From NCBI GenBank assembly GCA_004764695.1, contig SMSO01000011.1, positions 1 through 64,000 of the forward strand: a stretch of 64,000 nt of DNA. The letters run 5' to 3'. The position numbers and the translations under genes were made by a program. The stretch's first letter is position 1. Each line of letters begins with the position of its first letter. The notes below the pieces were generated by a model. It was not told where the DNA came from. It saw only the letters and a list, made by a program, of their open reading frames with translations, and ran no database searches. This DNA comes from Schizochytrium sp. TIO01 (taxonomy: Eukaryota > Protista > Bigyra: Labyrinthulomycetes). Below are positions 16,100 to 48,993 of this stretch, piece after piece.

Positions 16100-19000
16100 T
16101 TATTCAAAAATATAAGGGCCTAGATATCCCAATGCTTCACTAAAGGCAACATTTGCAGCTTCCAACATATCAAGCTCTACTTTCTGCGCAGAAAGATAGT
16201 CCTCTTTTGAACTCAGCTCATTCGAGCTGTTAACAGGCCAGGTTTGTGTACGAAGACTACGCTTCACGGAAAACGGCAGAGAAAGTGCATCGTTCACAAC
16301 ATGTATACAACGAAGCTCACGAGATATCTGCTCAAGTCTTGTCCTTCTTGTCTTTGCAGAACGAATTTGCTTATTCAATTCGAGCTCCTCGCGCATTTCA
16401 TTCATCCCCCGGGCCATTCTAGTAGTATCAGTAAAATCCAAATGACCTCAACTCCGTTCGTCAGTTAACAATTTCACGTCATCAAAAGGCACCCACAGTA
16501 TTGCCAGTACAGTTTCATTTATTCTCTGATGTTATCATGCTCTCTGTTAGATCCACACTCAACCAAACATTCAATTCCACAACATACTTGCAATGGCGCG
16601 AAGAAAAACATCGGCAAAATAACACACTAGACAACCCACGAAGCAACGAACCAACCAACTAACCAAGCCTCGTGTACAAACGAGTCCATAAACTACGGTG
16701 TTACTAAGTTAACTTACGATAGTGATGTCAGCGACCGGTTCTCTTTCAGCGCCGCAGCCACTGCTTTGGCGCCCTCGTCGCCGATATCGTTGCGTTCAAG
16801 ACTGTCGATTTGATTGAATGATGGCAAGCAGTAGATTACATTGCATCAGATGCACGCATGCATGCATGGACGTGAGTGATCTAGGTTGACTTTCAGCATT
16901 CATCTTTGTTGTGTTGTCATTTTGTTGTTTGTTCGATGGATGTATACTCACTCAAACAGACAACCCATCCATCCATCAAACAAACAAGCGATTACATAAA
17001 CTTGCAAAACAACACCGACCCACCCACCAAACAACAAACCAAGCATCATGTACAAACAAGTCCACGAGCTGCGGTGTTGCGTAGGCAACTTACTCAAGTG
17101 ATGTCAGCGACCGGTTCTCCTTCAGCGCCGCAGCCACTGCCTTGGCGCCCTCGTCGCCGATATTGTTGCCCGAAAGACTGTCGATTTGATTGAATGATGG
17201 CAAGCAGTAGATTACATATTACAATAGATGCACGCCAGCTTGCATGCATGGACGTGAGTGATCTAGGTTGGCTTTCAGGATTTCATCTTTGTGTGTTGTC
17301 ATTTTGTTCTTTGTTAGATGGATGTATACTCAGTCAAACAGACAACTTATCCATCTATCCATCCATCAAACAAACCAAACAAACAAGCAAGCGATTACAT
17401 AAACTTGCAAAACAACACCGACCCACCCACCAAACAACTAACCAAGCCTCGTGTACAAACGAGTCCATAAACTACGGTGTTACTAAGTTAACTTACGATA
17501 GTGATGTCAGCGACCGGTTCTCTTTCAGCGCCGTAGCCACTGCTTTGGCGCCCTCGTCGCCGATATCGTTGCGTTCAAGACTGTCGATTTGATTGAATGA
17601 TGGCAAGCAGTAGATTACATTGCATCAGATGCACGCATGCATGCATGGACGTGAGTAATCTAGGTTGGCTTTCGAAATTTGATCTTTGTTGTGTTGTCAT
17701 TTTGCTCTTTGTTCGATGGATGTATACTCACTCAAGCAGACAACTTATCCATCAAACAAACAAACAAGCGATTGCATAAACTTGCAAAACAACACCGACC
17801 CACCCACCAAACATCAAACCAAGCATCATGTACAAACAAGTCCATGAGCTGCGGTGTTGCGTAGACAACTTACTATAGTGATGTCAGCGACTGGTTCTCT
17901 TTCATCGCCGCAGCCACTGCCTTGGCGCCCTCGTCGCCGATCTGGTTTCTAAAAAGACTGTCGATTTAATTGAATGATGGCAAGCAATACATTACACGTT
18001 ACATATTACAATAGATGCACGCATGCATGCATGCATGTGAGTGATCTAGGTTGGCTTTCAGGATATATTTTGGTTGTGTTGTCATTTTGCTCTTTGTTCG
18101 ATGGATGTATACTCACTCAAGCAGACAACTTATCCATCAAACAAGCAAGCGATTACATAAACTTGCAAAACAACACCAACCCACCCACCAAACAACAAAC
18201 CAAGCATCATATAAACAAGTCCACGAGCTGCGCTGTTGCGTAGACAACTTACAATAGTGATGTCAGCGACCGGTTCTCTTTCAGCGCCGCACCAACTGCC
18301 TTGGCGCTCTCGTCGCCGATCTGGTTTCTAAAAAGACTGTCGATTTGATTGAATGATGGCAAGCAATACATTACACGTTACATATTACAATAGATGCACG
18401 CATGCATGCATGGACGTGAGTGATCTAGGTTGGCTTTCAGGATTTATCTTTGTTGTGTTGTCAATTTGCTCTTTGTTCGATGGATGTATACTCACTTAAA
18501 CAGACAACTTATTCATCCATCCATCCATCAACCAAACAAACCAAACAAACAAACAAACAAGCTATTGCATAAACTTGCAAAACAACACCGACTAACCCAC
18601 CAAACAACAAAGCAGGCATCATGTGCAAACAAGGCCACGAGCTGCGGTGTTGTGTAGACAACTTACACAAGTGATGTCAGCGACCGGTTCTCTTTCAGCG
18701 CCGCACCCACTGCCTTGCCGCCCTCTGAGCCGATATCGTTGCGAGAAAGACTGTCGATTTGATTGAATCATGACAAGTTGAATCATGACAAGCAGTACAT
18801 GACACATTATACATTACATTAGATGCACGCATGCATGCATGGACGTGAGTGATCTAGGTTGGCTTTCAGAATTTGATCTTTGTTATGTTGTCATTTTGCT
18901 CTTTGTTCGATGGATGCATACGCAGTCAAACATACAACATATTCATCCATCAAGCAAATAGGCCGTTGAACAGACTTTTAAAACAACAACGACCGACCGA

Positions 19001-47100: not shown

Positions 47101-48993
47101 AGACAACTCATCCATCCATCAAACAATCAAACAAACAAGCGATTGCATAAACTTGCAAAACAACACCCACGCACCCACCAAAGAACAAACCAAGCATCAT
47201 GTACAAACAAGTCCACGAGCTGCGGTGTTGCGTAAACAACTTACTTGAGTGATGTCAGCGACCGGTTCTCTTTCAACGCTGCAGCCACTGCCTTGGCGCC
47301 CTCTGAGCCGATATAGTTGCCATAAAGACTGTCGGTTTGATTGAATGATGGCAAGCAATACATTACATGTTACATATTACAATAGATGCACGCATGCATG
47401 CATGGGCGTGAGTGATCTAGGTTGACTTTCAGCATTTATCTTTGTTGTGTTGTCATTTTGCTCTTTGTTCGATGGATGTATACTCACTCAAACAGACAAC
47501 TCATCCATCCATCAAACAAACAAGCGATTGCATAAACTTGCAAAACAACACCGACCAAATCAGCACACCAACGAAGCAAGCATCATGTACAAACAAACCC
47601 ATGACCTGCGGTGTTGCGTAGACAACTTACGATAGTGATGTCAGCGACCGGTTCTCTTTCAGCGCCGCAGCCACTGCCTTGGCGCCCTCTGAGCCGATGC
47701 GGTTGTGTTGAAGACTGTCGATTTGATTGAATGATGGCAACCAATACATTACACGTTACATATTACAATAGATGCACGCATGCATGCATGAACGTGAGTG
47801 ATCAAGGTTGACTTTCAGCATTTATCTTTGTTGTGTTGTCATTTTGCTCTTTGTTCGACGGATGTATACTCACTCAAACAGACAACCCATCCATCCATCC
47901 ATCCATCCATCCATCCATCCATCCATCCATCAAACAAACAAGCGATTGCATAAACTTGCAAAACAACACCGACCCACCCACCAAACAACAAACCAAGCAT
48001 CATGTACAAACAAGTCCACGAGCTGCGGTGTTGCGTAGACAACTTACGATAGTGATGTCAGCGACCGGTTCTCTTTCAGCGCCGCAGCCACTGCCTTGGC
48101 GCCCTCTGAGCCGATATAGTTGCCATAAAGACTGTCGGTTTGATTGAATGATGGCAAGCAATACATTACATGTTACATATTACAATAGATGCACGCATGC
48201 ATGCATGGGCGTGAGTGATCTAGGTTGACTTTCAGCATTTATCTTTGTTGTGTTGTCATTTTGCTCTTTGTTCGATGGATGTATACTCACTCAAACAGAC
48301 AACTCATCCATCCATCAAACAAACAAGTGATTGCATAAACTTGCAAAACAACACCGACCCACCCACCAAACAACAAACCAAGCATCATGTACAAACAAGT
48401 CCACGAGCTGCGGTGTTGCGTAGAGAACTTACTCGAGTGATGTCAGCGACCGGTTCTCTTTCAGCGCCGCAGCCACTGCCTTGGCGCCCTCGTCGCCGAT
48501 ATTGTTGCCATAAAGACTGTCGATTTGATTGAATGATGGCAAGCAATACATTACACGTTACATATTATAATAGATGCACGCATGCATGTATGGACGTGAG
48601 TGATCTAGGTTGACTTTCAGGATTTATCTTTGTTGTGTTGTCATTTTGCTCTTTGTTCGATGGATGTAGACTCACTCAAATAGACAACTTATCCATCGAT
48701 CCATCCATCAAACAAACAAATGAACCAAAGATTGCATAAACTTGCAAAACAAGAACGACAAAAGCAACACCGTGCAAATAAAGCAACACCGTGCAAATAA
48801 AGCAAGCAAGCAAGCAAGCAAGCAAGCAAGCAAGCAAGCAAGCAAGCAAGCAAGCAAGCAAGCAAGCAAGCAAGCAAGCAAGCAAGCAAGCAAGCGACCG
48901 AGCGACCGAGAGTACCATGTTAACTTACTACAATGTTGTAGCGCCGTTCCGAAGCTGCTCAAGGGCATCGACAACATCTGGGTGGTCTGACAT
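41190..48993 (-). CDS. Multi-exon LRR protein gene 2 (RI/NLRC3-type LRRs, 18 LRR exons, 20 exons total, 632 aa, apparently intact)
   Basis: Exon 1 is 48929-48993 ([21 protein letters not shown] + TA|GTAAGT). The 84-nt LRR exons are at 48433-48516, 48048-48131, 47631-47714, 47245-47328, 46852-46935, 46476-46559, 46090-46173, 45697-45780, 45315-45398, 44926-45009, 44541-44624, 44155-44238, 43770-43853, 43385-43468, 43000-43083, 42610-42693, 42224-42307 and 41796-41879; all are CAG|...|GTAAGT, phase 2 and stop-free. The terminal exon 41190-41511 follows TACTGATCCTTAG ([18 protein letters not shown]...GPYILK*). Spliced CDS 65+1512+322=1899 nt, in frame. Confidence 0.9.
41780..48790. repeat. Tandem ~385-bp exon+intron array 2 (18 units), the LRR cassette array
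   Basis: Lower exon boundaries at 43000, 43385, 43770 and 44155 give a 385-bp period. Confidence 0.97.
48800..48895. repeat. (AAGC)n microsatellite in intron 1 of LRR gene 2
   Basis: Perfect tetranucleotide run of ~95 bp at the same relative position as in gene 1. Confidence 0.96.

Follow-up and report, generated by a model that had tools for sequence, protein, structure and literature searches.

Two LRR genes occupy the spacers between 5S genes and 18S–5.8S–28S units of subtelomeric rDNA copies in the window analyzed here (the 64,000 nt from position 1 of contig SMSO01000011.1 of Schizochytrium sp. TIO01). Variation among their repeat exons is concentrated in four codons that contain no stops and show an excess of non-synonymous differences; the variable exon starts ("heads") are inherited and recur in mosaic combinations, one of the two genes has an intact model, and one spliced junction was seen in a transcript from a related strain. 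The most probable explanation is that diversifying selection in the germline acts against concerted evolution, together with unit shuffling and recombination within exons. The genes may be translated, and their products may bind ligands in an immune or other recognition role.

LRR genes in rDNA spacers at a chromosome end

From the Rfam positions of the 5S and 18S genes (Table 1), each LRR gene takes up the spacer that separates a 5S gene from an 18S–5.8S–28S unit. The arrays are the Group 0 LORE-TEARS published for Aurantiochytrium (A. limacinum; bioRxiv 10.1101/2023.06.15.545109), with which they share a TTAGG telomere, an 18S–28S unit transcribed toward it, a 5S gene transcribed away from it, and tandem repeats of ~385 bp between the two. 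The periods determined here by TRF are 385 (gene 2; 17 copies, 89% matches) and 405 (gene 1; 14.4 copies). The published repeats were described as spacers without similarity to GenBank entries, whereas those in the window can be read as exon–intron LRR genes.

Table 1. Features of the two LRR genes and their surroundings (window coordinates).
Feature	Position	Strand	Details
Telomere repeat (CCTAA)n	1-409		TRF
18S rRNA counterpart downstream of gene 1	10606-12390		Rfam
Gene 1 last exon (tail), including stop	16100..16418	-	90% identical to MMETSP ORF P0001
Gene 1 LRR array	16718..22746	-	16 exons of 84 nt, phase 2; introns 271-330 nt
Gene 1 LRR exon starts 1-8	22663, 22308, 21903, 21498, 21093, 20694, 20289, 19884		
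Gene 1 LRR exon starts 9-16	19479, 19072, 18667, 18253, 17874, 17497, 17094, 16718		
Microsatellite counterpart, gene 1	22905-23193		
Gene 1 exon 1 homologue	23206..23271	-	One C too many in a C run, which closes the frame from the ATG after 11 codons
5S rRNA counterpart adjoining gene 1	23712-23829		Rfam
18S rRNA gene downstream of gene 2	35781..37567	-	Rfam; same strand as gene 2
Gene 2 last exon (helical tail)	41190..41511	-	1 base + 106 codons + stop; acceptor and frame read
Gene 2 LRR array	41796..48516	-	18 exons of 84 nt, phase 2; introns 292-344 nt
Gene 2 LRR exon starts 1-9	48433, 48048, 47631, 47245, 46852, 46476, 46090, 45697, 45315		Ends +83 nt
Gene 2 LRR exon starts 10-18	44926, 44541, 44155, 43770, 43385, 43000, 42610, 42224, 41796		Ends +83 nt
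(GCTT)n microsatellite in gene 2 intron 1	48800..48895	-	
Gene 2 exon 1	48929..48993	-	ATG + 21 codons + 2 bases; donor GT at 48928-48927; in frame with first LRR exon
5S rRNA gene beside gene 2	49454..49572	+	Rfam; divergent from gene 2, ~460 nt from its ATG

All 34 repeat units in the window lie on the minus strand, are exactly 84 nt long, and are preceded by AG and followed by GT. Each 84-nt exon begins with the third base of an intron-split codon and encodes 28 residues, equivalent to one ribonuclease-inhibitor (RI)-type LRR. Gene 2 gives an intact open model of 632 codons, for which the joined frame was counted for stops, and exon 1 is intact in 16 of the 18 copies sampled. In gene 1, the LRR-plus-tail frame is open for 553 codons. 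The frameshift in its first exon, which the initial annotation had not recorded, denotes either a pseudogene or an assembly error. The ~460 nt between the gene 2 ATG exon and the 5S gene hold no ORF for a nucleotide-binding domain (NACHT/NB-ARC) N-terminal to the LRRs, and a fused signalling domain (ROC-COR, kinase) is not present in the gene 2 model, which adds to the LRRs only a 21-residue N-terminal exon and a 106-residue tail. As part of the overall explanation, both arrays are predicted, with good probability, to be LRR-only genes that begin with a short ATG exon and end with a helical tail exon.

The RI-type assignment follows the repeat length of 28–29 residues and the LxxLxLxxN/CxL core with a helix after it. 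A profile built from 20 exons matches PDB chains with RI-like LRRs (best E = 9e-10); against Pfam LRR_6, a single exon scores 18.5 bits (gathering cut-off 23.4) and the natural homologue P0008 scores 81.8. In the predicted structure of a homologue, the core forms the strand and codons 8–21 the helix. The variable residues had been assigned to the ligand face, and on the natural-homologue model this assignment needs slight revision: x5 is the last residue of the β-strand and x7, x8, and x10 lie in the loop that follows, but x3 is conserved, and the variable set does not correspond to the whole concave sheet.

Variation within and among repeat exons

Translation of the 34 window exons reproduces the heads of the initial annotation letter for letter in both arrays, as well as its count of 26 distinct heads with zero common to both arrays. 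The intron-split codon also varies as reported, reading D, S, N, F, V, or Y. The claim of a far more uniform framework is borne out by a mean diversity (π) of 0.047 in the scaffold and 0.10 in the introns vs. 0.597 at the 11 variable bases, and the claim that the variable codons are never stops by a count of 0 against 6.8 predicted by the base frequencies of the columns (Poisson P ~0.001). Per-base diversity is 0.51–0.74 at exon nt 5–10, 14, 16, and 82–84, and 0–0.17 at most remaining exon bases, with nt 15 as an exception (0.22); scaffold third positions have a mean π of 0.038. The intron value was calculated over 301 columns, only 7 of which exceed 0.5, and is 0.074 for the gene 2 array. Further variation, absent from that annotation, was found at codon 8, which has two states (GAC Asp and TCA Ser, 17:17), at the second base of codons 11 and 15 (A/G/V and A/G, respectively), and at nt 82, which is the silent third base of a Leu codon and yet has a π of 0.65, as high as its neighbours.

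With up to 3 mismatches allowed, 1005 copies of a scaffold 39-mer were found in the genome, vs. 0 for the reversed control. From these ~1000 exons, 292 were sampled at 21 loci (the window and 20 other 10-kb loci). The organization is one exon per repeat, with constant-length exons and a single intron phase: 292 of 295 units have 84 nt, AG/GT borders, and phase 2, and exon length is constant, whereas introns carry indels and are between 162 and 716 nt long. Codons 2, 3, 5, and the split codon have the highest amino-acid entropy across the 292 exons (3.5, 3.3, 2.9, and 2.5 bits, respectively), followed by the two-state codon 8 (1.5 bits); no other codon exceeds 1.2 bits.

Divergence at the variable codons far exceeds silent and intron divergence (pN 0.59 vs. 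scaffold pS 0.134, scaffold pN 0.07, and intron π 0.10), in pairwise tests that count related sequences as independent. The scaffold pN/pS is ~0.5, and scaffold non-synonymous sites are mildly more conserved than introns. Stops at the three head codons of the 292 exons number 0 vs. 48.7 expected. Neither of the outcomes that the initial annotation had named as refuting was thus observed. Pairs of variable-codon haplotypes one step apart comprise 112 non-synonymous and 7 synonymous changes, where 19% synonymous would be expected (p = 6e-5, with related sequences again counted as independent); this is a ratio of 16:1 vs. ~4:1, or ~3.8 times the neutral expectation. Among scaffold variants the bias is reversed, with a deficit of non-synonymous changes. 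In the conserved Leu, Asn, and Ile codons located among the variable ones, diversity at silent bases is ordinary and not elevated. One-step changes by base pair (AT 26, AG 29, GT 24, CG 19, AC 14, and CT 7) have a spectrum similar to that of the introns. With all base-pair classes represented, they lack the adenine specificity, relative to a template repeat, of a diversity-generating retroelement. Nucleotide 82 is tightly linked to nt 83, which fits old linked haplotypes and would not be predicted from amino-acid selection alone. Two measures were discarded: the within-codon Nei–Gojobori ratio at variable codons (~1.1), as uninformative for saturated, multi-step codons, and flank-vs.-head distance over all pairs as a clock, because introns are homogenized within arrays.

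Units have been duplicated and moved both within and between loci. Repeated heads and two-unit blocks occur within arrays, the blocks are common to loci in different contexts, and many units arose by recent duplication. Between paralogous arrays, matching units still have identical heads where their introns have diverged by 0.4–3%. Seventeen of 34 mutual-nearest pairs (<3% flank divergence) differ at 0 of 11 variable bases, and the remaining pairs mostly reflect mispairing or a swap of the split codon. Where two exons have the same head, their upstream introns are more alike (p 0.049 vs. 0.113 for random pairs) than their downstream introns (0.128 vs. 0.171), and their 3′ trinucleotides agree in only 43% of pairs.

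Explanations for the variable codons and known systems

Under the favored explanation, the spacer repeat of 385–405 bp would consist of an 84-nt phase-2 exon encoding one RI-type LRR and an intron of ~300 nt. Exchange between units, arrays, and chromosome ends, in the form of unequal crossing-over and gene conversion, would homogenize the introns and scaffold codons (concerted evolution), and because exon lengths are multiples of three and the intron phase is uniform, a unit could be added, removed, or exchanged with the frame left intact. Selection for amino-acid novelty would maintain differences at x5 (the split codon), x7, x8, and x10 of LxxLxLxxNxI, predicted to form the end of the β-strand and the following loop, and recombination within the conserved part of the exon may re-pair heads with different 3′ ends.

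As the force opposing concerted evolution, the initial annotation had named two options: strong diversifying selection and a targeted diversification process. Support was obtained for the former, from the 16:1 one-step excess, the unraised silent interleaved bases, and the stability of heads, and none for the latter; selection in the germline is favored because heads are kept in paralogous arrays and the mutation spectrum is ordinary. That a targeted or programmed process (local hypermutation, templated micro-conversion, or somatic cassette exchange in the style of variable lymphocyte receptors, VLRs) writes the four codons is very unlikely. It could draw on ~1000 near-identical subtelomeric exons as a donor pool, and would accommodate both the block-wise variation of silent nt 82 and of all three bases of codon 8, and the unit pairs that differ by 0.5–2% over 280 nt of flanking intron and already by 36–52% at the variable bases. 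However, syntenic units of paralogous arrays retain their heads at 0.4–3% intron divergence, silent bases in interleaved conserved codons are not raised, and the intron-like spectrum has no adenine-specific or deaminase-like bias; moreover, a blind mutator would not deplete synonymous one-step changes, and gene 2 is complete in the germline rather than awaiting assembly. The four codons might instead be merely unconstrained parts of coding genes that are otherwise kept uniform by purifying selection or recent amplification, which we consider unlikely. Neutral sites in a homogenized unit should match introns and silent scaffold sites, whereas the variable codons are ~6 times more diverse, and the one-step test gives ~3.8 times the neutral non-synonymous expectation; in favor of missing constraint are the Nei–Gojobori ratio at the (saturated) variable codons, the near-neutral tail, and the recent duplication of many units.

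It is most improbable that the arrays represent non-coding repeats of the rDNA spacer (LORE-TEARS) into which an LRR exon was once captured, with the variable patch as the part of a spacer element under least constraint. The arrays do sit where sub-repeats of an rDNA spacer are expected, and were published as spacers without GenBank similarity; scaffold and introns are conserved alike, the start of gene 1 is frameshifted, and no Pfam domain besides LRR is present. Such repeats would nevertheless not account for 0 stops where 48.7 were expected, AG/GT borders in 292 of 295 units, an exon length that stays fixed while introns carry indels, or a non-synonymous excess in variable codons beside a deficit in the scaffold. 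In addition, most copies retain intact ATG and tail exons, ORFs from polyadenylated transcriptomes carry the tail and one splice junction, and LRR-plus-tail proteins are known in other organisms. We also hold it very doubtful that the ~1000 subtelomeric LRR exons are an actively used repertoire, from which programmed inter-array recombination or regulated skipping of symmetric phase-2 exons produces clonally different receptors; if true, it would represent a protist counterpart of cassette-based adaptive receptors that is physically tied to rDNA.

The VLRs of lampreys and hagfish are assembled somatically from an incomplete germline gene by means of cassettes. VLRs and the arrays described here have in common that many cassettes contribute a diversity concentrated on the binding side of the LRR modules, but the 632-codon gene 2 is complete in the germline. 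In plants, the LRR domains of NLRs and receptor-like proteins are under diversifying selection at x residues beside a conserved scaffold, and in the genes described here amino-acid change is likewise in excess at the x residues of the core, next to conserved scaffold residues. The plant proteins belong to another LRR class and are not known to have a homogenized array with one exon per repeat, and the genes described here have no NB-ARC/NACHT domain. In Ectocarpus, also a stramenopile, ROCO (LRR-GTPase) and NB-ARC-TPR genes carry each repeat in its own exon; the LRR exons have a fixed length, their shuffling underlies the variability, and they bear signs of diversifying selection (Zambounis et al., 2012; PMC3341825). 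Those exons are 72 nt long, encode a different LRR class, and are fused to ROC-COR signalling domains, in contrast to the 84-nt RI-type exons here, which belong to LRR-only genes with a helical tail in rDNA spacers at chromosome ends and have far more uniform introns and scaffold. In Tetrahymena, according to the part of the published account drawn on here (Xiong et al., 2019; PMC6564038), LRR genes with 90-bp exons likewise show very many fixed-length exons, an extreme phase-2 bias, expansion by unequal crossing-over, and subtelomeric enrichment. The same part gives Ka/Ks ~0.4 for young genes and reports no four-codon hypervariable patch. The Tetrahymena genes do not belong to rDNA units.

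The reading of a published genome feature is thereby revised: repeats published as non-coding telomere–rDNA spacers appear to be ~70 or more LRR genes with ~1000 exons, in which binding-edge residues differ from repeat to repeat and from chromosome end to chromosome end. They would give a very clean example, from nature, of concerted evolution and diversifying selection operating within a few bases of each other in one unit, and would place a candidate repertoire for recognition in rDNA units, which recombine frequently. They also offer a testable lead on possible foreign-molecule recognition by a marine protist that hosts persistent mirusviruses.

Tail exon and transcripts

The tail exon matches no Pfam family and is modelled as helical with low confidence (pLDDT 64). 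All but 2 of the ~100 tail-exon matches among those listed in the genome are stop-free. The dN/dS of the tail exon is ~0.8; this value, the only mildly stronger conservation of scaffold non-synonymous sites relative to introns, the broken first exon of gene 1, and the variability of nt 82 count against the main reading.

A search with MMETSP transcript P0004 as query matched tail ORFs only, a profile search for multi-LRR spliced ORFs retrieved only generic RI-type LRR proteins, and the exact scaffold 39-mer had zero matches in metagenome contigs. Beyond this genome, LRR-plus-tail proteins occur in other organisms. The MMETSP transcripts are at most 84–90% identical to the genomic copies scored, and thus derive from another strain or from unsampled copies. 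Their ORFs contain the tail, with one LRR–tail junction among them: P0004 joins a last-LRR exon to a tail of this type at exactly the predicted splice site.

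Distribution of variation within the LRR exons

A minus-strand search for the conserved core locates 34 units in the window, each with an exon of exactly 84 nt flanked by AG on its 5′ side and GT on its 3′ side; the exons are assigned to the ribonuclease inhibitor (RI)-type LRR class. Translations of all 34 match exactly the heads (the residues of codons 2, 3, and 5) read in the initial annotation, and its count of 26 distinct heads, none common to both arrays, is reproduced. Per-base diversity is 0.51–0.74 at exon nt 5–10, 14, 16, and 82–84, and 0–0.17 at most other positions, the exceptions being nt 15 (0.22), the two-state codon 8 (17 GAC, 17 TCA), and the second base in each of codons 11 and 15. 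The 11 variable bases have a mean diversity of 0.597, compared with 0.047 for the scaffold (the conserved remainder of the exon), 0.038 for scaffold third positions, and 0.10 for the introns (301 columns), which bears out the proposal that hypervariability is concentrated in a few codons of each exon. The window exons contain no stops, against 6.8 expected.

The same pattern extends across the genome. A scaffold 39-mer has 1005 matches at ≤3 mismatches in the 64-Mb genome, whereas the reversed 39-mer has none in the same search. The window and 20 other 10-kb loci yielded a sample of 295 units, covering 292 of about 1000 exons; AG/GT borders are present in 292 of the 295, and no in-frame stop occurs among them. 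Amino-acid entropy over the 292 exons peaks at codons 2 (3.53 bits), 3 (3.31), and 5 (2.92) and at the split codon interrupted by the intron (2.5), followed by the two-state codon 8 (1.54) and the remaining codons (≤1.2). The sampled exons carry 169 distinct heads, and their three head codons include no stops, although 48.7 are expected from column base frequencies.

Searches and structure models were based on single exons and natural homologues. The exons were aligned to one such homologue, the database protein P0008, which was modeled with pLDDT >90 over its LRR part. The model places the split codon at x5 of the LxxLxLxxNxI motif, as the final β-strand residue; codons 2 and 3 at x7 and x8, immediately past the strand; and codon 5 at x10, in the loop ahead of the helix. 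The variable sites, initially attributed to the ligand face, coincide with the positions of the main ligand-contact residues of ribonuclease inhibitor. Codon 8 corresponds to the first residue of the helix in this model. Because Asp and Ser are both common as helix N-caps, it would be a neutral two-state site.

Selection, mutation, and reassortment

The variability was initially ascribed to either diversifying selection or a targeted diversification process, and five results together favor selection acting on the protein. Diversity at the variable codons exceeds silent and intron divergence, with pN of 0.59 being more than four times the scaffold silent value (0.134) and about six times intron diversity (0.10); scaffold pN/pS is ~0.5. 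Codons 2, 3, and 5 together form 171 distinct 9-nt haplotypes; 119 pairs of these are one base apart, of which 112 are non-synonymous and seven synonymous, compared with 19% silent expected when stops are excluded (p = 6e-5); one-step changes in the scaffold are biased in the opposite direction. The Leu, Asn, and Ile codons interleaved with the variable codons have ordinary silent-base diversity, so that a mutator acting on the DNA would need to leave those bases out. Against such a mutator, the one-step substitution spectrum resembles that of the introns, without adenine- or cytosine-specific bias, and unit-by-unit comparison of paralogous arrays shows stable heads. Array 1 and L049, a sampled locus elsewhere in the genome, have in common the units GKN, SFK, FRQ, FRQ, ERD, and SGN, in which 0–2 of the 11 variable bases have changed at 0.6–3% intron divergence. 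Across loci, 17 of 34 mutual-nearest unit pairs with flank divergence <3% are identical at the variable bases, and most of the remaining pairs are mispaired or have changes confined to the split codon. Near-saturated head differences, as fast mutation would produce, can occur between units whose flanks are almost the same; given the stability of heads between paralogous arrays, these reflect homogenized introns instead.

Arrays differ in which blocks of one or two units they have gained, lost, or duplicated, and some blocks are common to several loci. Exons with the same head have more similar upstream introns (p 0.049 vs. 0.113 for random pairs), and this sharing is weaker downstream (0.128 vs. 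0.171). Codon 8 is identical in 78% of same-head pairs and the 3′ trinucleotide in just 43%; thus, breakpoints also lie within the conserved stretch of the exon. The last three bases form three linked classes (nt 82–83 being A-T, T-G, or C-A), and silent nt 82 is highly variable because it is linked to old haplotypes of the neighboring selected base.

Gene models, tail exon, and transcripts

Gene 2 has a 65-nt exon 1 upstream of array 2 that runs from an ATG start up to a GTAAGT donor and shares the frame of the first LRR exon; of 18 sampled copies of this exon, 16 are intact. Downstream of the array, the last exon codes for about 105 residues followed by a stop. By stop counts in the joined frames, the predicted gene 2 is open over 632 codons (exon 1, 18 LRR exons, and tail) and gene 1 over 553 codons (16 LRR exons and tail). 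The ATG frame of gene 1 stops after 11 codons because of the extra C in its exon 1 (see table), which marks a real pseudogene or else a long-read homopolymer error in the assembly.

Positions of features in the window
Feature	Position	Strand	Remarks
Subtelomeric repeats, three families	803–5890		Periods about 370, about 533, and 417
rDNA segments	6427–14750; 31570–39959; 59444–64000	−	Pairwise identity just 94.8–96.6%
Gene 1, LRR exons	16718–22746	−	16 exons
Gene 1, (GCTT)n microsatellite	22905–23193		Intron 1; 72 copies
Gene 1, exon 1	23206–23271	−	One extra C in C run vs. gene 2 and 16 other copies
AT-rich stretches between rDNA-LRR units	26000–31570; 51630–59444		tRNA genes Arg-ACG, Thr-AGT, Val-GAC, Phe-GAA, Trp-CCA
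Gene 2, LRR exons	41796–48516	−	18 exons
Gene 2, (GCTT)n microsatellite	48800–48895		Intron 1; 24 copies

Of the roughly 100 tail-exon matches listed for the genome, which are 36–90% identical to the query, just two contain stops; with dN/dS of ~0.8, the tail is therefore fast-evolving yet open. A complete HMMER search with the tail against 1.8 billion proteins returned three clusters, whose members include MMETSP transcriptome ORFs. One of these, P0004, runs from a last-type LRR exon directly into the tail at the exact predicted donor and acceptor, and the more distant relatives P0002 and P0008 are uninterrupted RI-type LRR proteins that end in the same tail. Thus, LRRs followed by this tail constitute a real protein architecture. 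The MMETSP transcripts reach at most 84–90% identity to the scored genomic copies and are therefore probably from another strain; LRR-to-LRR splicing in the TIO01 arrays is predicted from the sequence. Genome-wide, the tail falls into at least two divergence classes (55–90% and 36–42% identity to P0004), both open over about 114–126 codons, a split that suggests at least two old gene subfamilies.

In every intron, the final 35 nt continue from an ATG into the exon without a change of frame ([12 protein letters not shown]..., e.g., window 22747–22781), and it is there that ORF callers and the predicted P0004 N-terminus begin; this could represent intron retention or an internal start. Near other arrays, on the strand opposite to them, are exons of a more distant LRR family, in which the scaffold (…[17 protein letters not shown]…) and the borders are different (L046, minus, near 9569; L048, minus, near 9673; both sampled loci).

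Chromosome-end setting and comparison with known arrays

The window is a chromosome end, opening with 81 CCTAA copies (TTAGG telomere; TRF); next come three subtelomeric tandem-repeat families, and then three minus-strand rDNA units in the order 28S, 5.8S, 18S. A plus-strand 5S gene lies further in from each of the first two units, and arrays 1 and 2 (TRF periods 405 and 385) occupy the interval from the 18S gene to the next 5S gene. This layout agrees with the LORE-TEARS described for Aurantiochytrium limacinum MYA-1381, in which ~385-bp “Group 0” repeats, reported without GenBank similarity, lie between 18S and 5S (bioRxiv 10.1101/2023.06.15.545109). The subtelomeric families correspond, in table order, to LORE-TEARS Groups 2, 3, and 1. 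In the literature searched, no publication connecting Aurantiochytrium subtelomeres to LRR genes was found.

Exon-per-LRR arrays that evolve by exon shuffling are already known, from Ectocarpus (72-nt exons, with exon shuffling and signs of diversifying selection; PMC3341825) and Tetrahymena (90-bp phase 2 exons with subtelomeric enrichment; PMC6564038). New features are a unit of RI type with 84 nt, the extreme contrast of four codons with all other sequence, the predicted LRR-only-plus-tail protein, and the location in chromosome-end rDNA spacers that the literature calls non-coding.

The first and second rDNA segments are 94.8% identical across 8.4 kb, and the identities among all three are low for copies within one genome; the differences may be true divergence between units or assembly error. 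Because tRNA genes occupy the AT-rich stretches between them, the rDNA-LRR units are not a plain tandem rDNA array. The same stretches hold two longer Rfam tRNA matches (106 and 115 nt) that are not called by ARAGORN and may contain introns.
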